DNA of 63,538 nucleotides, counting the filler, from Pelomyxa schiedti (lineage: Eukaryota; Protista; Evosea): assembly GCA_020536535.1 (NCBI GenBank). It is 12 parts of 12 records of this genome, joined end to end, with 100 filler letters (N's around TTAATTAATTAA, not from the genome) between each part and the next. Parts side by side here need not be neighbours in the genome. Positions count along the whole stretch, not along the records: positions 37,698 to 46,880 come from JAHLWZ010000469.1; 11 more parts are not named here. One strand, 5' to 3'. How positions within the stretch are numbered: the stretch's first letter is position 1; each line of letters starts with the position of its first letter. Below the pieces are notes generated by a model, which saw only the letters and a list, made by a program, of their open reading frames with translations, did no database searches and was not told where the DNA came from. Shown here one piece after another: positions 6,765-46,880 of the stretch. The position numbers and the translations under genes are program-made.

Positions 6765-9087
6765 TCAGTGGTCCAATAGTTCACCAAGTTCTTCTTCTGT
6801 GACTCCTTCTATGGGAGAGTGATCTTCGTCCTCCTCGTCACTGTTACCATCGGTTCCGCTTGAATTCCCTTCATACTGGCCTTGCTCAGCATTGCTGTCA
6901 CTGTCCTCTTTCTCTTCTTGGGCACTGTCTTCATCAGAGCCTTGCTCGGCTTGGTCGGGTGGCGGTTTGGGTTTTGGTGCCGTGACTGGTGCTGGGACGG
7001 TTTCAGGAGCGGGTGTGAGAAGTTTTCCGGTGCACCAGTGGTGTGCTGGTTCGGGTACGCGCCGCCTCTTGCTCTCCGGTTCTAGACTGTTGTTTTATGG
7101 TTATGAAGTGGAAAGACTCAACTTTAACGTACTTGGTGGTGGGAGCAGTTATTCCTGCTCGAATAAATCGCTGTGGGAAAACTGGAAGGTTCTCCAAAGG
7201 AAATTCTTGCTCGCGCGGTTTAAGCCATCTTTTAAAGGCTTCACGCAACCTGTGGTAGGGGTAAGGAATCAAAAAAAAAAAAAAAACTCTAGTGGGGTAC
7301 CATTCCACATGAACAAGGTAGACGGGTTCATCCAGTGCAGTTGTTACTTTATCTGTGCCACTCCGTGCGGCAATGACGTGGGTAACATTACGTGCCGTTG
7401 CTAAACGGTGAGTGCTTGGTCTTGTTTCTTCTATTTATACTTGTAGTTCAAAAGCTTACTGTCAAAAGATGTGCAACACTTTGCCCCACATGACTCTGCT
7501 TGTGTCCACAATGGATGCCTTTTTGGGTATGAAAAAACCTTGGAAGACGTGCAACATACATTATTGGGTCTGGGTAGTCAAGGGGTATTACTCCACTGAA
7601 TACTATGCACACATCCTCTAGTACCCGCTTTCTTAATTGGTCAATGATTGTCTATGAATGAAAGGTGAGAAAATAAGAATCCTTGAGGTGACAATATACT
7701 CGGACATCCCGAGGTCCTGGCTTGGAATAAAATGAGTGATGTATCCTATTCAACTTGGTAAGCATGTGTGAAAGGTGATCATCTTTAATAGCATCTGGAT
7801 TGGGAGCTAGAGCATCAGGTGGTAATGCACTACCAAATGGATCGGTAGGCTCTGGAAAGTATGTAACTAATTATGAGATTAAAAACTGGAAAGGGTGCTG
7901 TGATTTTAAACAAACATTTCTCAATCTGGAGGAGGTTAGGAGAGTTTTTCCACACGTCAGGTGTGTCATCAACTACAACTACCATACTGTCATCCCCCAT
8001 TGAGGGGAAAAACTGTTTCAATAGCTTCAGTTGCCCTAAATCCAAGTGTTATCTCTCAGGGAAAAAAAAAAAAAAAGACGAACCTTCCTCTGCAAATGTC
8101 TCAGGGGTGTCATCCTTGGAGATTATTCTGTGCTTAAACGTTTTGTGCTTGGGATCAATGTGCTCACATATCTACACAAAAACCTTTAATTTGATGGGAG
8201 TTTCCGGAAAACAAACTTTAAGAGCATAAGATCTAATTCCCATTGTATAAAGATAAACTTCATACAGTTTCCTGGCACTCTTCAAAAAATCCTTTAGTCC
8301 AGGCCTGCAGGGAAAAGTTTTTTTTTGTAAAAAGGGAACCATAAATATTTGCATACCTTTGTTTTACAGAGTACTTCACCCGGGGTTGCTCAGGTAGAGT
8401 AAAAGAGAAACACCCATCACCTTCAAATGGGACACCCATTGTAGCGTGAATCAAAGTCTGGTCCAAGTCACAAACCTGAAATTGGGTCAGTGCCACAAAC
8501 CAACAAATTCTTAAATTGGGGAAAAGGAACCAATTCGACAAAAAAAAAAGGAAAAAGAGAGATGAGGCCTTCATTAGGAAAAAGACACTCACCAAAGCCA
8601 GCCTGCCCTCGGTCAACATGCTATGTGTTGTATCTGTCTTGAGCCTGTTCGCCACTCTCGCGGGGACCGACAACCCATTTGGTAGTGAGACCCTGTCTCT
8701 CACCTGGGCTCCCGACATTACATTGCTCAGTCCCAGGCCGAACCCCACGCTTGGGGTCGCTTCTACCACTGTCCCACACGCGCAACATATTCCGTCGAAT
8801 ATCACACCGTCGTGAGCGCATTTTACTGCAGCGGCACTACCCCGCCCAGCACTCGTCGTCGGTGGTGACGAAGGTTTTCTGACGACGACGCGCCTGCCGT
8901 TAGTTGTTGTTTTTGACGCAGTGGAAGAAGTAGTTGTGGTGTTAGTTGTTGTAGCAGTGGATGTGGCCGCGGCGGCTTTTAAGGGCGCAGTCGGCGGTTT
9001 CCGAGGGGCCGCAGTCGACGAAGGAGACGGTGAGGACGTGGACTTGCTGTTGTCGGCATCCGGTATCGCTTTGGGCGGCCCGCTCAT
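6765..9087 (-). CDS. FCP1: RNA polymerase II CTD phosphatase FCP1/CTDP1 (multi-exon)
   Basis: CAHDGVIFDGICCACG, catalytic DLDQTLIHAT, RPGLKDFL...LYTMG..SYA and VVVVDDTPDVW motifs, then BRCT-like exons and an acidic tail. Confidence 0.93.
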
Positions 9088-9270
9088 TCTCAGTATTGTC
9101 GCTGCTCATGGTTGAGAGGCCAAGTTGGGTACAAAATTCTGGAAGGACTGCGAAGTGGTGGGGTTCCCCCACCAACACAACCGCGATTAACGCAAGACAA
9201 ATGCTTCATGAGGACACCCTGCCTGAGAGGAGCAATACCTGTGTAGTTCAAGGAAAATGAACTACGTTGG

Positions 9271-9846
9271 TTGATGGACTGGAGGGAGGCAACGGCCTCG
9301 GTGTGGGGTCACAGGGTAACTCGCGGTGGTGTCGTTTTGTTCTATAGCTGCAAGTCCATTCCGGCCAGTTCCGACGGCGGCGATGACGCCCTTCCCATAA
9401 CGCCGCTCCCGCGCCGCGGGGACGTAGTGGAGTTCGTGTCCGCGGACGGCACTCTCGTCGCGTCCTACACCCCAGTCGCGGACCCCTCCGACGACTCCTC
9501 AGAGGTCAAGACCTGGGATGGCTTTTTCAGGGTCAAGATGGCTCCCTGCTCCGACCCATCATCGCCTTCCACGCGCAGTCGCTGTCGCGGTAGCGGACGC
9601 GGAGGCGGGCGTGGTTGCCCCTCGCGCAGTTCCGCGAATGGGCCGTACCCCACCAAGCGGTGGCCTCAGTACCTCGACATGGTGCACGACACCAAGACAA
9701 ACAGAGTTGTGATATGCTCCAGGGCTCTCAACATATGTTCCAGGCTGTGGGACAAAGCATCTATTCCACATTCCGATTCTAGTTCGGACTCTGACTCTTC
9801 CGGGGCACCCAGTCCCGAGTCTGAGGCGTCTTCGGAAGAATCCTGA
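9271..9846 (+). CDS. Hypothetical protein, divergent from FCP1
   Basis: GC-rich 191-aa ORF with protein-like composition; no recognised domain. Confidence 0.45.
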   Translation: MMDWREATASVWGHRVTRGGVVLFYSCKSIPASSDGGDDALPITPLPRRGDVVEFVSADGTLVASYTPVADPSDDSSEVKTWDGFFRVKMAPCSDPSSPSTRSRCRGSGRGGGRGCPSRSSANGPYPTKRWPQYLDMVHDTKTNRVVICSRALNICSRLWDKASIPHSDSSSDSDSSGAPSPESEASSEES

Positions 9847-9949
9847 GCAAGAGAGGGTTCTTCTTTTTTTTTTACAAAATAGAGTCGGGATAAGGGAAAA
9901 TAAGAACGGAATATTTTTTTTAAAACAAGGCAAGGAATGGCCTATAGGT

Positions 9950-11675
9950 TTATGCCATCTTCCCAAAATCACAGTCAAAGACTGAATAAACAAACGGTAA
10001 GAATTCCTCTCTTGCCTCGGGTGTGTCGTCTTTATCCTTTGCTAGCATCTTGCTGTCACCAAGGTACTCGAACATGCGGGCCATAGCGGTGAGGGTTTTT
10101 TTCTCATCCCGTTTGGGCTTGAGCAGGCGTTAGGGAGCAGGGACACAAAAGGGCTTGTTACACACCTTGCAGATCACAGTCAAAAAGTTTGGAGGTAAAC
10201 CATAACGCAAAACAGACTCTACAAAAGTTCGTATAACCTTGAGGTGCACCCAGGCAATGAATGACTCGGCAAAGTTCACGATGCACCATCTCATCAACGC
10301 TTTCTACACGGCGTGACACGGCTATAACAAATATAGTGGGTACCTTTTGGTTAGTAAGCTCCTCAAGTTTTTTGGTGCGTGATTGCTTGTAGGTATCAGA
10401 AAGTTGATCACGTGAGAAGTCACGGACAGTGAACCTGGATGTAAAAAGTGAACAACTTGGTACTCTCAAGAGGCAAATATACCTCCTTTCTCTGGCCAAA
10501 TTCTTAAAATCTTCCGTGGATCTCTTAAAGAGAATGACAGTGTATAGCCCATATTCAGAATCCTCAGCCAGAAGCCTAACCAAGAAGTAAATTAATCATT
10601 GGTTTGAGTTCACAAATTGGATTACTCAGAGGATCCAGGCACTACAAATTCAGTCAATCCCTCGTAGGAAGCAAACCAGTCTTTATATGCAACCCTGTTC
10701 CAAACGTAAGGTCACGGTACAAAAGGCAGATAAAAACTTGGGGACTGCAACAATGAGAGTGGTTAAATTTTCCGACTCTACGAAGCGTTGTGGGGTTACA
10801 ATTTCAGAGAGGTTCTTTGTGACAAGAGAAGTTCTGTGGCATGTTGGGCTGAGAATTGGGATTTGAAAACTTACCCTTCTTTTCGTTGTTCAGCAGCAAT
10901 GTCTCTGGCAATGTTGTTATAAGAGGTTGTCTTGGTTCTCAATTCTTCATCGAGTCGGGAGATGTGCTATAGGCAACTTCAGAACTACGCAAGTGGGTTT
11001 TTACTTAGCCTAAACCTGTGAAATTCTTGCTGTTGTCTCTTTTAGTGGTGCCTTGGGAGAATACTTGGCATCTTCCCACTGGAACTGAGTGAGGTATGCC
11101 TCAGGTGTCTCTACAAAACCAAAAAAAAAAAAAGAGGGAAAAACCATCAGAACCCTTATCACGTCAAGAGGAAGTAAATGAATAAAAGTGCCCAAAACGG
11201 GGCAGTGCCCCTTCCCGCTTTATAATTCAACACAATTCAGCCAAAGAAGTAGGTAAGACGTACGCCCGCGAATGAGCAAATCCACAGGAAGAGCAACAGG
11301 CTTCACGTCAGCCTTGGCGTCGGGCTTCCCGTCGCCCTTCGCGTCCGCCTGCTGCGAAATCCTCAATTCCTCGTACTGCTGGGCAATCCTCCTGGTCGCG
11401 GTCTCGGCGAAAGTCTCGAGCCTCTGCAGCTCGTCGCTAAGCAGCATCAGCGTGTCCTGCGTCCCCACGTTGAGTGGCGGCACGTCGAACTGGAAACACG
11501 TCGCCAGATCTCTCAGTCCCGTCTGGACCTGGGGCACCTGAGAGATCGCCCCCTCCACCCCCTTGGGCACCGACGACAGAATAAACAACTGGCGGCCGAC
11601 GGATCTCGGCGGTGCCGCGGCCGACGACGTCGCTGCTGACGCTGGCGACGATGTTGCGTTCGATGTGCTGCTCAT
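9950..11675 (-). CDS. ATP6V1C: V-type ATPase V1 subunit C (multi-exon)
   Basis: [76 protein letters not shown]-terminal EFLPFVY. Confidence 0.95.
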
Positions 11676-37263: not shown

Positions 37264-38201
37264 CACTGAGGGAAAAGTTTTGATGGTCTGATTTCTGTGA
37301 AAAAAACAAATATCCCTCCTCAAACAAGGCAGACATGTTGAAAAGGCATCGGCAACAGTCCCAAACATCTCAGTGTGAGTCAAATGAATCATTGGAGATG
37401 ACTGAAGTGGCAACACAACCAACAGTGTCAACCACAACCCAGCAGACAAGTGGTTGGGTGTCCTCAACTGTTGGAGGACATTCCTTGCGTGCAACACCAT
37501 CAAGGTAATACCTCTGTGGGTGTTATGTAGTCTGTTCTACCATCATAATGCATGTTTTAGGAGGTCACGAGGGAGTGATAATCCAGAAAGTCAAGGGNNN
37601 NNNNNNNNNNNNNNNNNNNNNNNNNNNNNNNNNNNNNNNNNTTAATTAATTAANNNNNNNNNNNNNNNNNNNNNNNNNNNNNNNNNNNNNNNNNNNNAAA
37701 TAACTATGTTTTAATTTATGATGTTTGTTTGTTTAGTACCTTGAGTGAACTAGCATCGTCGGCCGTGAAACAGTAACTCAAATCAACAACTGGGTCCGAC
37801 CACCATCTCGCAGCCTGATACGCAATTGTGGGACGACAAGACAGAAAGAAAGCAAGCAAAACGCGAGGAAACGACAAATAATTTGTTTTTTTTTTGACCT
37901 GCAACACCCCAAGACGAACCCCCCAACGTCGACATTCTTTTATTTTTTTTTTGATTGTTGATATTTTGTTCGTTGTGACTTCGATCAAAGAAACCACAAT
38001 CCACGAACTGTGCACTGAAATGATCAGATCCATTGACCAAACCCAACACGAAGTGAACAGGAGTGCGGTGGAGAAAGAAAGGAGAAATTAAACACTAATT
38101 TGTATCTATATTGCCCTCTGTACAAGGGGTGGCCCCTATTGTAATAATAGGGGAGGAGTCAAGAGGCAACCCAAAGAAGTTCTTTTCAATTAATGACAGC
38201 T

Positions 38202-40147
38202 TCAAAAGAGGGAAAAAGCAAGAGCAACCAGCAGGGCACTAGCTAAGTGGTATTGGACAGAAGAGCCCACAGAGAGGGAATCAGTCCCTGATGCTGATGA
38301 TACAGAACTGGAGTTGCTGGACATGAATCCACTTGGGTTGGCTCGTGAAGAGGCGTAACCATCAGTACGGCACTCAGTGTAGTACGTTTCGAAATTAGCC
38401 CCATCAGGATACACAAAGCAATCACCNNNNNNNNNNNNNNNNNNNNNNNNNNNNNNNNNNNNNNNNNNNNNNNNNNNNNNNNNNNNNNNNNNNNNNNNNN
38501 NNNNNNNNNNNNNNNNNNNNNNNNNNAACTGGAGTTGCTGGACATGAATCCACTTGGGTTGGCTCGTGAAGAGGCGTAACCATCAGTACGGCACTCAGTG
38601 TAGTACGTTTCGAAATTAGCCCCATCAGGATACACAAAGCAATCACCACAAGTGTCGTCTGTGCATTGCCATGGTACAATAACCCCTTGTTCGTCAGACC
38701 ACTGGAAGTAGCCCCACAGGTTGTTGTCAATGAGTGTGCATGCTGCATTTGTAGTGTATTTGATGGTCTCAGGTGTCCCTTCACAGTCGGCATTGGCCCA
38801 TGTTGCAATCCATCCCGGCCTTATTAAAAATAAATAAATAAATCAGGAAACAAGTTGGGAAAGGCAAACTCACTCTTCTTGGAACCAGGCATGAACCTTG
38901 CTGTCGAAGTCATCAGTAGTGATACAGCAGTAGCCGTTGTTCTCAGATCTACAGTTCATTGTGGAATCCGCGGCCCAGCAATAGCCAGTATTGGGACTTG
39001 AGTAGTAAGAGGCCGAGACGGTGATTACATCTTCGGTGCAAGAGTCATCTGTGAATTCGGCATCCACGTACACATAGGTGAAGTTGCAATCACCTCCGTC
39101 ATAGTTGCATTCCTCAATGTTACAGTTAGGGTCACAGTCCAGATCACCAACGTTTGACAGAGAGCACATGGCCGCGCCACCGCAGTATGTGCCATCTGAG
39201 AATCGTAATTACTTTTGAAAGAAAGGTAGAAACAGTGTGCATACTACAATCGGCGTCATCCCAATTGCACAACTCGTTGTAGCACCCAGATTGGCATGTG
39301 CCATCGCCGACCTGTGTCTCCAGGCACCCGAAGAAGCAGTACCCTTCAAGAGCCGCATCACAGTCACCATTGTCCCAATTGCATGCCTCTGTATAGCAAG
39401 AGGTGTCACAGGTCCCGTCACCGCGGTCAACACTGGTAACGCACCCAGGTGAGCACATATCTAGTAAGGAAGAGTTCAATTTAAATGATAGTTACAAAGG
39501 AAAAATCAATGTACCGTTGCAGTCACCTAGATCAAAGTCACATTCCTCAGTGTTGCACTCCCAGTCACAAGAGTCGTCCCCAACATCATCGGCACTGCAG
39601 CCTTGGGCACAGTTGAGATATACTTAAGAAAGTCAGTAAAATCTCCGGGTTAAAAAAAAAGGAGCAATACAGCAGTCTCCGTCATCAAAAAGGCAGTCAT
39701 CGTTGGCGCATTCAAGGTCACAAATACTATCACCCCAGTCAGCCTCATCACAAGTCCAGTGGCCACAAGCCGAAACGCCACAGTCTCCAGAATCATAGTT
39801 ACAGGCTGCTGTCATGCACCATGGGTCACAGTGCCCATCCCCGATATCGGAGGCAGAACAGCCAGCGTTACAGAGGCCTGGGGTTGAGAGAAAATAAGTA
39901 TAGGTTGAATGACGGTTTTGTTTTGTGGTTGTGGGTGGGGGTTCATTGCATATGAGAAATTGTGGATGAACAGTGCAAAAATACCAGCACAGTCTCCGAA
40001 ATCCCAATTGTTTCTGGCATTGTAGCACTCAATGTCGCAATTACCATCGCCGAGATCGGAAGACCAGCACTCGGAGGACCATCCCTCATACGCAACCGCA
40101 AAGCCCACAAAGCCAAGTAACACAATAACGTGTTGTTGGTGCGTCAT
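38202..40147 (-). CDS. Secreted, GPI-type protein with about 7 LNR (Lin-12/Notch) repeats
   Basis: Signal peptide MTHQQHVIVLLGFVGFAVA; repeats C-x(3-5)-C...GDGxCDxxCxxxxCxWDxGDC; Ser-rich linker and hydrophobic tail YHLASALLVALAFSLF*. Confidence 0.85.
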
Positions 40148-40612
40148 ATGTGTTCTTCACCCTCCCTCGATATTCACTTTGTTTTGTTTTGCTTTGCTGG
40201 AACAACAGAAAAACACTGCCCGCATCACTCACTACTAGTAGGGTCAATTTTTCGTATGATCGCCGTTTTTGCATTTTTGTACGAGAACCCGAAATGAACA
40301 ATTGCGAGGAGCTCGCGGGGCTGGGCGTCTTTGAAACGATGCTATGCCCAGGCCAACTTGCTCATAACTGTGATGATGTCTTGATATCGAGTGGCCAACA
40401 ATACTTTAATTGAATCCACTAAGCAGTGGTTGACGATAACACTTCACCTCTGAATTTGTTTTTAGAAACTCCATCGAAACGTTCTTTCCCCGTTCATCAA
40501 TCGATTTTAAAAACAAAGACAATTAACGCAACGTTAACGAGTCCCGGGTGCGTTTGTTGGATCCGAGTCTAACGAGCCACTTTTTTATTTTTGTTTTTTT
40601 GGACGCCTCTTG

Positions 40613-42276
40613 ATGTCTACGTCGCGGATCAATATCTACGTTGTGGGACGAGGACACGCTGGCAAGTCTTCGTTCTTGAACGCGTTGTATAAACACATGA
40701 CCCAAAAGGTCCTTCCCTTTTAATTTTCGTTGACTTTATACGCTGCCAAATTGTAAATTTGTTGTCTGTTAATTTAATCATTCCATCACTTGTGGCTTAC
40801 TGTATGGCTGTTGAAGAGTGTGGGACCGTTTCCAGTGATGACTGAGACAGCTCGCGGAACAATACATCTGAGAATTGTGGGGCTGGATATTACTAGGACA
40901 AGACAGCAGATTAACCTGTGTGATACGGCTGGGCTTCAGTTTACTCCCACCTCATGTGCTCGTGACTACGAAATTTTGGAGAAAATAGCTCAGGGTCTGC
41001 CGGCTAATCAGGATTTACTTGCTGATGGCATAAATACCGTCGCACCTGTTGTGGAAAATGCTCCTTCTGTAAGTTGGTGGGAATTTTCCACATTTCTAAT
41101 CATCAACCAAGATATTTTTGATGGTTGTTCGAGCTGATATGTTGCACTTTGAGAAAGTTTCTGGCCACAGAGTGCTAAAAGCGGAAGACCAAACTTACAT
41201 AATTAATTTGAAGAAGCACATCTCAACTATTATGAAGCACCAGGAACCTGCTTTGATAGTAACTTGTTGTGACAAAGTCAATGTATGTATTTTTACCTGT
41301 ACTTTACACTCACCTTCTGCAGGATACCAATCTTATACAGAGCGCACTAAGCTCCATCTTTTATGCCAACCGAGGTTTAGCATTTCAAAAACAAAATTTT
41401 GTTCCATCTTACACTGTGCAGTTTTCTTGTTTGGGCAGAAAGAGAACCCAAAAACCAAAGAAGTTTCACTTGACCCCAAATACACCCCAAACCTTGATAC
41501 ATTGATCCAGCTGTTTACTTTAGGTGAGATGCCAAATAAACGCGTTCTATTACTAATGTTTGGCAGTTGTTCCCGCAATAGTTGCCAAGCCAACCAAGGC
41601 AGTGGAACCCACAACACCATCTCATCCCTCGAATCCCCCACCTCGCCCCGAGCAACCTACTGAAACAACACAGACAACAGAAGGGCCCCAACATCCCCCT
41701 CCTCCCCCTACATATATCCAGCAGCCCCCACAGCCCCCACCCAACCCACAACCAAGCCCATATCCTCCCGGAACACTTGTGGATCAATGGGGAAACTTAG
41801 TCTATCAGCAGCCCCGGCCAATGCCCCCATACCAACCCAACCCCCAGCCACCCCCCGGTATGTATGGCCAGCCATACTACGGCCCCCCACAGCCGCAGCC
41901 CGGAGCCAGAATAATAATCAACGGACCACCACCCGGTGTGATCCGGACATACAACCCACCACCACAGCCCGGTGGCCCCATGTACTACACCAACCCAGGG
42001 GGACCCTACCAACCCCCTCCGCAGCCCATGGGCTACATGCCCGGGCCTCCCCCGGGCCCCGGCGGGCCGTATTCCCAGCCCCCAGGGGGGAGCATTATCT
42101 ACAACAACAACAACGGGGGCCCCTACTCGCAGCCGTCACAGCCGCAAATGTACTCGCGGCCACCACCTCCTCCCGGAAGCGGGCCGTATCAGCAGCCACC
42201 TCCCCCGCCTGGGTTCACTAACATGCCTCCCCCTCCTAATACCTGTGCCTATCCACCTCCCCCTCCAAACTACTGA
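40613..42276 (+). CDS. P-loop GTPase (IFI44-like arrangement) with a Pro/Gln/Tyr-rich tail
   Basis: G1 INIYVVGRGHAGKSSFLNAL, G3 LCDTAGL, strand IFLMVV, G4-like LIVTCCDK; about 230-aa tail ending YPPPPPNY*. Confidence 0.7.
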
Positions 42277-42450
42277 GGACACTTTTTGACTTGTTGATCC
42301 TTGGTACCTGTCAACACCGCATTTTACAACCTAACACACAACTCAAGTGTAAAACCACAACTCTGTAGGAACAAAAAAGCTTGTGAAGAGTCTTTCCTTT
42401 TTTTTTATTTTCCAGACTTTCTATCCTTATACATTATTGGTGTGAGAGTG

Positions 42451-45400
42451 TCACCACGGACATGAGACAACAGTAAATTCAACAAGGAGCACAGAGGAAT
42501 TCAGTGACATTACAGCGAAGTGGTTCAATTCGGTCTCTGATGTCCTTCCATAGTTTAATACACACCTACATCCAACAACCACAACCGGGTTGCGATTTCC
42601 TCCCTCTGTGCTAGTACTGCTGTTATTGTTATTATTCCCTATGAACTTTGCTCTGGCTTGGACCCGGTAGGTTCCGGGAACGGCTTTCCTCAGTGTATAT
42701 TCAAATGGACCCAGTCCCACTGGGCTTGTGCCGGATAGCCTTCCCCCAATGGATGTGTGGTTGTGCCACGGGCTGCATAGTTCTCCGGAGGGCTCAGATA
42801 CACTCAATTCCACATCGGAATCGCTGCTGGTGGTCCAGAGAATGACCCTCAGGTCTAATTCCACTGAGTTCTCTTGGTCCCAGCTGTGCAATAATGGTGA
42901 AAATGATGATGCGGAGGCCGCGGATGATTTGAGGGATAGGGTGTGTGATAGAAGGTCTAGTTTAGCTGTTACTTGAAGGCCGAGGTACTTTGGACCACCG
43001 CAGCTTTCACCAGAGGAAAGGGATTGTAGGGCCGAGACAGCGGAAAGTATTTCTTGCTTTTCTATACCTGAACCTCTGAGGGAAGCTACTGCAGTGTGGT
43101 AGGAGTACTGTAGCAGTGATTTCCGGAGTGCAAAGGCGGCTTTCCATGCTGTCAGGGCCTGTGTCCACAAACCTAATGCCTGGCAAACTGTAGCCATGAT
43201 GCCAAGAGGTTGCATTTCACCAGGAGAGTGCTCCGCAATGTTGCTAAGAATTCTGTAGGCATCCTCACTGCTTCCAATAGATAGAATATGAAGAGCACTC
43301 CCTATAATAAAGGCACAAGCGGATTGGCCTGATTGAATTATGTATTCATAGAGCTGGCGGTACTTCCGCATCAACGAGTCTCCAGTTTCTCCAATTCCTT
43401 GGTGGGAGAGTAAGTTGCTACAAGTTGGAGCACACTGAGTAGAAGAGTGTAGTTGATACTTCAGTACCCTCTGGTTGTCTGGGGAACTGAGTTCAACAGA
43501 ACCGGTCATTGATGGAACCATTGATCCCGGAGTGAAGACGTCACGGCGGCGTTTCACAGGCAAAGCTACAGTGTCTTCCCAAGGGAAACTATAGTTTTCC
43601 GGGAGAGAGTGCGATACTGTCGAAGTGACCCGGTTTTGTAGCAGAGCCCGGCGTTCTCTTTCTAGAGCGGCTTGGGAGATAGCAGCTCGTTGGAGGGAGC
43701 CATCAGGATTCTGGACTAATTTGAACTTGTGCGCTGTGTGGAACCTGGGGGTTTCTCTTCTCACTGCAATGGAATCCCCCAAATCAACACTCACTTTCTG
43801 AAGTTCGGAAAACGAAGTACTAGTTATCTCTTCAGGCACAGTTGGTAGTTGAATCCTGCTTCCCATGGGAGCTGGAATCTTATCCCAACGGGAGAGTACT
43901 ATAGGCTTGCCTGAAGGCGGCCGTGGCGTGCTTGAATCCCAGGAGGGCCTTTTGTCAGTATTTTCTATTTCAATTTCCGCAGATGGGTCCCTCTTTTCGC
44001 GAGCCGCCATCGTTGGTTTCACGTAATCAGCCATGGTGCATTGCCAGGACTTCTTGTTCAAGAAGTTAAGGTGTGCCCGATCGTCAATGTCTTGTTTCGT
44101 TCTATCTGAAAAGGTTTTCAAATCAGTAGCACCACGTCCAATTGGAGTGGCTGCGGCAGGTGGTCCGCTGGAAAGAGGTGCACTACCACAAACACCATGA
44201 AATGTATGTGACAGTCGCCTGAAAGCTGGCATGGATTGCGGTGGAGGGATAGGGGGCATGCCAGGTGGTCCCCCAGGTGCCATTCCATAGAGTATTCCTG
44301 GAGGCACTATAGGAGGCATTCCTTGAGGCGAGAAAGAAGGTAATCCAGTTGGCATTTTGGCTGCAGTCCCATAGGGGGGAGTAATGAACCCACAAGCACC
44401 CTCATCTAATGACGGATATTTACCCAAATCCCGAATGGTAGTTTGGAGTTCAGCCTCATCGAATTTGAAACCATGTCCTGCGTATCCATACGATTGTGAG
44501 GGTGTCTGCATCTCCCTCGCCTCTCGTAGTATTTGTTGAGCTGTAATTTGCACTGGTGCTGGTGCTTTATTTTTAGCCTTGCTCCTTGGAATGAGATCTG
44601 GGGCGAAATCTGACGGATAGTACTTGTGGAGTGGAACATTACGTCTGACAACTTGCTTGGGTGGTTCTTGTATTTCCTTCTCAACGAAGGAATCTTGAAG
44701 AGGTTGGGTTATTTGAAAGTGCAGGAATTCCGGATGGGGTGTTTTCTCCTGATATTCAGTTGTTGCCCATTTCAGAAAATTCTTCCACAGTATTGCGGCA
44801 ATGTATCCAGCGCGGTCTTTTTGTTTTTCTTGGTTATAGTTCGCCTCATGAGCTTGTGTATTAGTTATGCGCCAATATTCAGCATGAAGGTTGGGAACAG
44901 AGAGTGGGGGTGAAATTTTGTGTGTCAAATACTGATCAAGAGTAAGCAGTACCAAAAAGGAGAACCCTTCTCCACATAGATTGTAGGTTCGGCACAGAGC
45001 TAAAGTGTTGCTTCTATTCCTCTGGAGCTTCTCAATTTCCATGAGGGCCCACCTTCTGCCAATAATGGTTCCAAACTGATCCTCATAGTACCTCGACTGA
45101 CAAGGAAGAGAAAAGGGTACTCTCTGATCAATTCCGCAAGATGTAAAATCCACCAGAAAGCTTGCTGATGATGCGCTCGGATTTAACTTACCATAAAGGA
45201 TGTAGGGCTCAAATGGTGACACATCTGTCTGTGAAACACTGGCGCAGCATTTCTCCAAGGTGATCTTGGGATTCGAGGTTTTTGCTAGGAGATATTCCAC
45301 TGCCTCTTCAGCATTATATATTGAGAGGTTTACGCATTTCCCAGAATTTCGTTGCGCCACNNNNNNNNNNNNNNNNNNNNNNNNNNNNNNNNNNNNNNNN

Positions 45401-46880
45401 NNNNNNNNNNNNNNNNNNNNNNNNNNNNNNNNNNNNNNNNNNNNNNNNNNNNNNNNNNNNTGGCGCAGCATTTCTCCAAGGTGATCTTGGGATTCGAGGT
45501 TTTTGCTAGGAGATATTCCACTGCCTCTTCAGCATTATATATTGAGAGGTTTACGCATTTCCCAGAATTTCGTTGCGCCACTTTCCGGAGGAAAATATCA
45601 CTATACTGTGAAGTCGCAGCGCTGTTAAATACGCAATGAATAGCACAGCCAAACGAAAGATGATCATCCGAATTTCTCATGGATAAGGAGTCAACTCCAT
45701 CAGAAAATAAAACCCAATAGGCATACTCTCCTGCCTTGGCTTGACACCAGGTAGCAAGTCTGGCGTAGTCAGTAGCTCCAGTATAAAGAAGAGATGAAAG
45801 TAGGTCACCAACAGTCGCCTGCTGGAGGTCATCAGCCAGTGAGTGCACATCAACACTAAAAGAGAATATGTCAATGCGAGCGGGTGTTTGTTGAAGAAGG
45901 GCTTCAATCACTGCTATTTCTGATGAATGTGAGCCTTCTGCTCTGCTGTAAGAAGCGTCCCAGAGAATGCCTATTCTACTATTGTCCTCTGAGTAGCTTG
46001 TGGTCTGGGGCAGGATTTCTGGGTGCGTGGTGCAGGCGCACATAAAGAAGAGCTCTGGGTCTGGTGTGTCACCCAAGGGTCTCGAAGATTCAACTGCGAT
46101 GTAGTACTGAGGTACGTCAGATATAAAGAAGTCGAGAGGATCCAGAAGTGCAAAAGAATCTGCTCCTTGGTCTATTCTAAGAGAAGCTTCCATCCAATTC
46201 CCTTGGTTAACAAATTGAAGTACGGACGAGACAGGGTGCACGTTTGGCGTAATCTCCCTATTTGTTTCATTGTCTAACACACAGTCCACTCTTGCGTGCA
46301 TTTCAACCGTCCTCAAAGTACTGTGGGAACGCAAGCTGAATGGCAATGCGTAAAAGGAGCTGTGTGACTCCTTCTCGAACCTCATCTGATGTGTATACCG
46401 TACGCAAATCTATATGCGAAAATATGTTAGTTCTCATAAGGGGCAGAAGCTTGCCTTACTTTAGTAAGTTGACCAGGTCTGATTGGGAAGACTTTGCACT
46501 TGTATATATTAGAACTAGCCACACTAGAAGAAATGGCAGCCGCAGAGCCAGAGTCCCTCTCAGCCTCATAAGCAACTGCAGCAGCCTCAGTCTCAACTAT
46601 AGAGGCCTCTCTCATAACCCCATCAACCTCAATAGAATATCCACACACAGTACCACCACTAGGCAGAGGAACAACAAGGGAACCCTCAATGCACCCAACA
46701 GAATCTGCACAACCATTACTTGCAGTTGCAGTTGTTGGTGATGCAATTGCAATAGCTGTTGCTGATGTCACTGTTGACGAATAAGAAGAAGGGGAAGGAC
46801 AACAAGAAGAGGGATTATGGGACGATAGCAACCAAGACATCGAGAGCAGGGTCTCGGCCACGATGGTTCCCACGACCCTG
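42451..46880 (-). CDS. VIT-vWA-TPR-DUF2135 protein with an inserted spliceosomal-motif cassette (5' end at scaffold edge)
   Basis: VIT EGSLVVPLPSGGTVCGYSIEVDGVMREASIVE...VFPIRPG; vWA IGILWDASYS...LFSDGVDS; FLVLLTLDQY..HKISPP; TPR AYRILSNIAE; DUF2135 DLRVILW...DVELSVSEPSGE...IGGRLS...GPFEYTLRKAVPGTY. The two ORFs join across an overlapping gap. Confidence 0.85.

Follow-up and report, generated by a model that had tools for sequence, protein, structure and literature searches.

Closest described systems

In the plasma protein ITIH4, which combines a VIT with a VWA domain, a protease-susceptible region serves as bait, and the protease that cleaves it is trapped in a complex depending on the MIDAS (metal ion-dependent adhesion site; PMC7793589). 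A gene encoding the same two domains is found in the DNA analysed here, a window of 63,538 nucleotides joined from 12 parts of the genome of the amoeba Pelomyxa schiedti (GCA_020536535.1). It lies at 42451..46880 on the minus strand, within the piece 37698-46880. Its product, termed the window protein in the following, carries a disordered cassette between the domains of a VIT-VWA-TPR-YfaP_C scaffold (TPR, tetratricopeptide repeat), and in this cassette conserved peptides of at least five spliceosomal proteins are lined up as short copies: YJU2, CRNKL1, DDX46, PRP6 and DHX8.

ITIH4 and the window protein share a VIT domain, a VWA domain whose MIDAS is canonical, a non-globular, exposed region containing proline, and a folded C-terminal part (PMC7793589); the two are compared by architecture alone, and homology is claimed for VIT and VWA only. 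In contrast to the amoeba family, ITIH4 is a secreted vertebrate protein, its bait does not consist of pieces copied from other proteins, and its C-terminal part contains neither TPR nor YfaP_C. The bait region of alpha-2-macroglobulin, too, is exposed and variable and is presented to many enzymes that attack it, but the window protein is devoid of macroglobulin and thioester domains. The DUF2135/YfaP domain takes its name from a gene in the E. coli yfaS (alpha-2-macroglobulin) operon; no alpha-2-macroglobulin neighbour was present in the one bacterial gene context that was examined.

In plants, nucleotide-binding leucine-rich repeat receptors with integrated decoys (NLR-ID) are paralogs of a conserved scaffold which carry inserted copies of pathogen-targeted host proteins. 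These copies are quickly gained and lost, and their original activity is dispensable. The amoeba family likewise consists of a conserved scaffold whose paralogs contain different host-protein copies, an analogy of logic only. It differs in the scaffold itself (VIT-VWA-TPR-YfaP_C), in its occurrence in Amoebozoa, and in that several inserts are short linear peptides arranged in series instead of whole domains. Short copies of conserved host motifs in a disordered region are also the hallmark of short-linear-motif mimicry by pathogens; here, however, the peptides are carried by a gene of the cell itself, and the DHX8-like piece, at least, is homologous, i.e. copied, and not convergent. Bacterial VIT-VWA-TPR-YfaP_C proteins (for example P0001, P0005 and P0158) show the same domain order and are homologous in VIT, VWA, post-VWA region, TPR and β-sandwich, but possess signal peptides, and their linker is TPR or coiled coil and free of eukaryotic protein pieces. 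At most, and by analogy, the window protein may work like ITIH4 or the integrated-decoy receptors.

Three splicing-factor peptides in one reading frame

The core of the cassette is formed by three peptides that share one frame of a long minus-strand open reading frame (ORF; 44631..44449):

44584..44631, minus strand: peptide resembling the YJU2 N-terminus, LHKYYPSDFAPDLIPR (matches in PDB and to Pfam Saf4_Yju2)
44512..44583, minus strand: peptide resembling the CRNKL1/Clf1 N-terminus, SKAKNKAPAPVQITAQQILREARE, with a predicted short helix (PDB matches)
44449..44493, minus strand: DDX46/Prp5-like motif, SYGYAGHGFKFDEAE (three-copy profile against PDB)

The initial annotation of this DNA had proposed that mimics of Yju2, Crn/Clf1 and Prp5/DDX46 follow each other back to back, and profile searches, named at the time as a possible refutation, did align the peptides to all three families, the likenesses being stronger than chance would give. 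For these searches the window's own letters were used as query and compared with the sequences of all PDB chains. A 71-residue stretch returned the N-termini of CRNKL1/Clf1/Cwf4 from six species as top matches (E 1.9e-4 to 3.8e-3), followed by the YJU2 N-terminus, which bears out the likeness of the second peptide. When the first peptide was searched alone, YJU2 was the sole family returned (chain residues 6-24, E 0.13-0.26). A two-copy profile, composed of the window sequence and its full-length relative P0002, identified YJU2 residues 7-22 with an E-value of 4.7e-4, with the paralog YJU2B next, and the peptide also corresponds to positions 1-20 of the 332 positions of the Pfam Saf4_Yju2 model (E 0.034). 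As to the third peptide, DDX46 was not returned from PDB by the peptide alone, nor by a word-indexed search with residues 284-333. A three-copy profile (one copy from the window, two from P0002) nevertheless identified DDX46 residues 769-785 as the sole PDB family (E 0.0023), so that the Prp5/DDX46 assignment holds by way of the profile.

The match to YJU2 and the match to CRNKL1 have an I-P-[KR] junction in common, at which they overlap, so that there is no spacer between these two peptides, while six residues separate the CRNKL1-like from the DDX46-like peptide; the back-to-back arrangement within one ORF is thus as proposed. The I-P-[KR] tripeptide itself (44572-44592, minus strand) is part of both source motifs, which could reflect micro-homology at the junction or coincidence.

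Further pieces of the cassette

Outside of this triplet, four more stretches can be distinguished:

43570..43746, minus strand: DHX8/Prp22-like piece of about 59 residues, piece-A 539-597 (PDB and library-wide search)
44077..44163, minus strand: degenerate block resembling the PRP6 N-terminus (PRP1_N), identified by alignment to segment 851-882 of P0002
44233..44355, minus strand: proline-rich stretch, absent from P0002, with no named match in the PDB search
44044..44067, minus strand: island NFL.KKSW, conserved in comparison with P0002, with no named match in PDB or Pfam

In PDB the DHX8-like piece matches DHX8 residues 455-512 as the sole family (E 4.6e-5), and its source is the part of DHX8 that lies between S1 domain and helicase core. 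In a search of 1.84 billion representatives, a genuine N-terminal fragment of DHX8 (P0095) matches it at E 3.1e-15. The piece is too long and too similar for convergence, and homology is therefore the appropriate explanation. A word-indexed search with the same region gave nothing at E<=10, a type of search in which short pieces cannot reach significance among 5.8 billion sequences. The initial annotation had further suggested capture of short coding pieces or selection for mimicry, which fits both the homology of the DHX8-like piece and the conserved islands between diverged linkers described below.

The PRP6-like block of the window has no Pfam match on its own. Its counterpart in P0002 (segment 851-882), however, matches Pfam PRP1_N, the PRP6 N-terminus, over model positions 1-32 of 144 with an E-value of 3e-6. 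In each search with a named piece, the assigned family was the sole or the top family returned. A faint match to Pfam SART-1, a tri-snRNP protein, was observed at 44194-44226 on the minus strand (E 0.3, residues 379-389, model positions 557-567), which may be a sixth piece or a chance match. Two further candidates were rejected: the SRWD/SWD stretches, considered as U2AF-ligand motifs of the SF3B1 type, and a PPGMPP stretch, considered as a copy of an Sm or SF3A tail, gave no splicing-factor match in PDB searches with residues 306-420 and 415-545.

YJU2, CRNKL1, DDX46 and DHX8 are not represented by their defining domains. Past the N-terminal peptide, no full Saf4_Yju2 domain was found in the window protein in Pfam or PDB searches. 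The CRNKL1-like peptide is not followed by a HAT repeat array, the PDB matches ending at about 30 residues and no HAT or Suf match being present in Pfam, and no Pfam helicase match indicative of a DEAD/DEAH helicase core was obtained. With only short peptides and no defining domains, the window protein is not a member of the YJU2, CRNKL1, DDX46 or DHX8 families, and probably not of the PRP6 family either.

Gene structure and scaffold

The window protein belongs to the family with the VIT-VWA-TPR-YfaP_C scaffold, all three defining parts of which were found. The gene is organized as follows:

42451..46880, minus strand: whole gene, with the order VIT, VWA, folded linker domain, disordered cassette, TPR solenoid, YfaP_C/DUF2135-like β-sandwich
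46460..46880, minus strand: exon 1, VIT domain (Pfam PF08487 and alignment to the P0002 N-terminus)
46410..46459, minus strand: spliceosomal intron of 50 nt with GTAAG donor, CTAAC branch and TAG acceptor, read from the sequence
45462..46409, minus strand: first part of exon 2, VWA domain with intact MIDAS (WDASYS, GATD and FSDG motifs)
45361..45460, no strand: scaffold gap of 100 N inside the gene, with an exact 121-nt duplication on its flanks
44746..45360, minus strand: folded post-VWA region of β-strands and a long helix, from the secondary structure and predicted local distance difference test (pLDDT) of an AlphaFold2 (AF2) model
43513..44745, minus strand: disordered cassette of about 410 residues, piece-A ~206-616 (pLDDT and identity to P0002)
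42871..43431, minus strand: TPR-like α-solenoid (AF2 helices 644-830, pLDDT 80-95)
42463..42858, minus strand: C-terminal β-sandwich, homologue of YfaP_C/DUF2135 (phmmer; AF2 strands 835-966)

The ORF ends with a stop codon at 42451-42453, as seen in the ORF table and translations, while the N-terminus of the gene lies beyond the edge of the piece, so that about 30 residues are missing in comparison with the full-length relative P0002, which the window gene matches at E 4e-170. The VIT domain is identified by Pfam PF08487 with an E-value of 4e-13 (49.9 bits, cut-off 26.5). Removal of the 50-nt intron restores the reading frame as well as the alignment to P0002, ...TK being joined to I.VRYT.... 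In the VWA domain, the MIDAS motifs DxSxS (WDASYS), GATD and SDG align with those of the relatives; the VWA_CoxE match in Pfam has an E-value of 5.7e-4, which is under the curated cut-off. The post-VWA region is common to bacterial and eukaryotic relatives, many of which align to query residues 95-240.

An AF2 model based on 36 aligned relatives predicts confident folds for residues 1-200 and 617-966 of the ORF piece. The cassette in between (residues 206-616) displays pLDDT values almost wholly <50, with short helices predicted at the CRNKL1-like (residues 274-283) and DHX8-like pieces. The solenoid matches MamA, OGT-TPR and SycD in Foldseek and phmmer searches, and Foldseek of the AF2 model against PDB returned generic TPR solenoid proteins only. 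Together, TPR and β-sandwich match PF09906 proteins over query residues 680-915 with phmmer E-values of 1e-20 to 1e-23, and many PF09906-bearing proteins match the β-sandwich via residues 831-915; the Pfam DUF2135 model itself gave no match at E 1 or better on the window protein. An NCBIfam scan yielded no functional information on the window protein, and none of its pieces contains a NB-ARC, NACHT, LRR, TIR or CC domain in Pfam. Neither the window pieces nor three relatives of bacterial type matched a PADLOC model.

A second gap of 100 N in the piece, at 38427-38526, is likewise flanked by an exact 121-nt duplication. These exact duplications around both gaps indicate unmerged overlapping contig ends, and hence no sequence is missing. 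Such overlaps yield spurious duplicated peptides in ORF lists, as in the case of a 40-residue stretch at the 45361..45460 gap. A single ORF runs from scaffold through cassette to scaffold, the frame being open over about 3 kb, and the gene is a cellular, intron-containing, eukaryotic gene.

Its neighbours, a gene with LNR repeats and introns and a proline-rich ORF, are eukaryotic as well. The several LNR (Notch/Lin-12) repeats of the gene at 38870-40147 (minus strand) match Pfam PF00066 with E-values of 3e-6 to 7e-11 and are distributed among no fewer than three exon-like ORFs. The ORF at 41560-42276 (plus strand) is rich in proline, glycine and glutamine, converges on the VIT-VWA gene's 3' end and has no Pfam match; the local GC content is 64%, compared to about 45% elsewhere. 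No tandem repeats were found in a search of the locus.

Conservation and turnover of the cassette

Overall, the window protein and P0002 are 47% identical. The scaffold parts range from 46 to 52% identity, whereas the cassette as a whole shows 28%. Within the cassette, conservation is concentrated in islands: the YJU2-like, CRNKL1-like, PRP6-like and NFL islands are 47-62% identical and the DDX46-like motif 35%, compared to 7-26% for the linkers between islands. The content of the cassette differs, too. The DHX8-like piece and the proline-rich stretch of the window protein are absent from P0002, and the DDX46-like motif is present in one copy in the window protein but in two copies in P0002. 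P0002 and P0003 are the nearest relatives of the window protein, far ahead of the rest, and both contain spliceosomal cassettes made of different sets of pieces. Among the closest relatives the spliceosome theme is thus kept while the cassette content changes.

Paralogs with pieces of other core proteins

An exhaustive library search through the post-VWA and TPR/DUF2135 parts revealed 1374 relatives. Most of them belong to the bacterial type of VIT-VWA-TPR-DUF2135 (YfaP_C) protein, in which signal peptides are present and the linker is TPR or coiled coil. The closest relatives are eukaryotic and belong to Archamoebae, namely P. schiedti (genome GCA_020536535.1) and Mastigella eilhardi (transcriptome). 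Here the scaffold is kept, and differing pieces of core eukaryotic proteins occupy the place of the window cassette (E-values from Pfam):

P0002: YJU2-like, CRNKL1-like, two DDX46-like motifs and PRP6 N-terminus
P0003: SKIP/SNW (SKIP_SNW, E 2e-16) and the KH domain of SF1/BBP (BBP-KH, E 4e-23)
P0004 and P0006: actin (E 1e-98 and 3e-115, respectively), partial in P0004 and covering model positions 2-410 in P0006
P0093: tubulin fragment (E 1e-10, model positions 89-188)
P0017, P0154, P0155 and P0041: synaptobrevin and Ras/Rab GTPase
P0136: synaptobrevin
P0066: Snf7 (E 1e-21) and PH (E 3e-15)
P0034: DnaJ, with the whole J domain (E 3e-24), and a weak match to E2 (UQ_con)

The Pfam E-values of the synaptobrevin matches range from 1.3e-11 to 1.5e-23 and those of the Ras/Rab matches from 3e-34 to 3e-50. 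In both genera the Rab cassette is rearranged, the segment from switch I to the end of the G-domain being followed by the β1/P-loop segment (GxSGVGK[TS]). This arrangement is located at about 865-1040 and 997-1170 in P0017/P0154 of Mastigella and at about 1043-1200 in P0041 of Pelomyxa, and either a circular permutation or a junction of two tandem partial copies could give rise to it. Since several cassettes are fragmentary or rearranged, they are not working enzymes.

At least eight paralogs are encoded at separate loci in P. schiedti; P0002, P0003 and P0006 sit among ordinary eukaryotic genes in the same assembly, and the Mastigella members are transcripts. Signal peptides are present in the bacterial relatives but absent from the eukaryotic members, which are therefore probably intracellular. 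The M. eilhardi Trinity isoforms P0017 and P0153-P0157, six from one member, range from 632 to 1814 residues, and this spread may be due to alternative processing or assembly variants that affect the N-terminus or the cassette. A further member of the scaffold family, with the VIT domain on its own exon, was observed at 7447-11012 of a 135 kb metagenome contig (L004, ENA ERZ21831265). With fragmented calls and pieces of RasGEF and NPC1 the contig looks eukaryotic, suggesting that the family is also present in unsampled eukaryotes.

Several family members are named in NCBI after their cassette or otherwise: KAH3765894.1 (P0003) as 'Branchpoint-bridging protein', KAH3744382.1 (P0093) as 'Tubulin beta chain', KAH3764700.1 (P0006) as 'actin family' and KAH3731978.1 (P0041) as 'TonB-dependent receptor'. 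A search of the literature library retrieved neither a description of the family nor a paper tying VIT/inter-alpha-trypsin domains to Archamoebae, and neither of the Archamoebae genome papers mentions the family. The architecture and its peptide-level cassettes thus appear to be undescribed, while the logic of bait or decoy has precedents.

Possible function of the cassette

By analogy with the systems introduced above, the cassette could be a display of host peptides that acts as bait or integrated decoy and is made of pieces captured from the organism's own genes, a reading which is the best supported of those considered and which we put forward while remaining slightly on the side of doubt. 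According to this proposal, at least the longer pieces would have been captured from the amoeba's own genes and retained by selection as display copies. An enzyme that attacks or binds the genuine host protein, for instance a microbial or viral protease or modifying enzyme, would engage the exposed copy in the cassette and would then be held or sensed by the scaffold through its VWA-MIDAS and TPR parts. Each paralog might guard one cellular machine; for the window protein and the two proteins nearest to it, this machine would be the spliceosome. The precedent of ITIH4, the functionally critical role of the N-terminus that is copied from YJU2 (PMC8022279), the paralog series, the conservation of the islands, the fragmentary nature of several copies and their turnover fit such a display. 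Moreover, a published account describes P. schiedti as harbouring abundant prokaryotic endosymbionts (PMC10579272).

Several observations weigh against a display of this kind. No attacking enzyme or partner is known, and the present analysis gave no sign of cleavage, trapping or signalling. PADLOC ties neither the scaffold nor its bacterial relatives to catalogued defence systems, and the one bacterial gene context examined was uninformative. ITIH4 acts extracellularly and has only the VIT-VWA part of the architecture in common with the amoeba proteins. Cassettes with complete domains (actin in P0006, the J domain in P0034, KH in P0003) could bind or co-assemble instead of serving as bait. To our knowledge, the spliceosome is not well documented as a target of microbial proteases or other enzymes. 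One published account of DDX46 gives no native role for residues 769-785. Finally, the likenesses that would point to capture from own genes are likenesses at the protein level.

The main rival to bait or decoy display is targeting or regulation by mimicry. In this case the copies would bind the originals' surfaces and either bring the scaffold to the machine or compete as endogenous regulators, which we consider unlikely, though not negligible. For the paralogs, the corresponding proposal is that their copies become part of actin, ESCRT-III or SNARE assemblies, or that the J domain recruits Hsp70, and it is similarly doubtful. The pieces are indeed conserved peptides of their sources, and at the active site the N-terminus of YJU2, itself essential, engages the branch helix (PMC8022279). 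The short helices predicted at the CRNKL1-like and DHX8-like pieces within a disordered chain would be in the style of binding motifs, several paralog cassettes are complete and interaction-competent (full actin, J domain, KH domain, SNARE motif), and proteins without signal peptide would reside in the same compartment as the machines. However, the tubulin piece 89-188, the rearranged Rab and the partial actin of P0004 should not fold or assemble normally. The spliceosomal sources, in turn, act at different stages and places of splicing (U2 snRNP, tri-snRNP, branching and exon ligation), which makes one docking geometry unlikely, and the presence of the DHX8-like piece in the window protein but not in P0002 is more in keeping with an arms race than with a fixed housekeeping task.

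The same variability of cassette content between relatives would also be expected of a neutral mosaic, in which an insertion-tolerant linker passively gathers functionless, retro-copied or recombined fragments of host genes. The disorder and the poor overall conservation of the cassette (28% identity) are in line with this explanation, as are the shortness of the pieces and the degeneration of some of them, such as the PRP6-like block of the window. It is nevertheless improbable: the frame is open across about 3 kb, islands stand at or above the conservation level of the scaffold while the linkers are decayed, the pieces are conserved N-terminal or inter-domain peptides of their sources and not random parts, and the theme is kept in close paralogs (spliceosome three times, synaptobrevin with Rab in two genera, actin twice). 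A foreign gene of viral or parasitic origin, or a chimera created by assembly or gene modelling, is very improbable. The mainly bacterial occurrence of the scaffold type, the draft scaffold with its N gaps and the inconsistent NCBI names among the relatives might point in this direction, but the ORF is uninterrupted over scaffold, cassette and scaffold and the gaps are 121-nt contig overlaps. Furthermore, the gene has a canonical spliceosomal intron and eukaryotic neighbours, no viral features were seen at the locus, and the same architecture is encoded at no fewer than eight P. schiedti loci amid normal eukaryotic genes as well as in Mastigella transcripts.

Implications for Archamoebae

Names that derive from the cassette or are wrong could mislead inventories of splicing and cytoskeletal genes of P. 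schiedti, and the family explains them. Whatever its function, the family would offer a clear example from nature in which exon-sized pieces of unrelated essential genes have repeatedly been captured and joined together in one disordered region. If the cassette is bait or decoy, the principles of the NLR integrated decoy and of the ITIH4/alpha-2-macroglobulin bait would hold for a new scaffold, too, and in free-living amoebae. Many intracellular bacteria and giant viruses evolved in such amoebae as their natural hosts. A still more tentative extension of this reading is that Archamoebae possess a non-NLR family of intracellular guards, which originated from the bacterial VIT-VWA-TPR-YfaP_C scaffold and of which each member baits for one machine. 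If so, the guarded machines would comprise the spliceosome, actin, tubulin, Rab/SNARE trafficking, ESCRT-III and the chaperone/ubiquitin system, the spliceosome would be a regular target of microbial or viral attackers in protists, and the cassettes would represent a natural catalogue of attacked host peptides.

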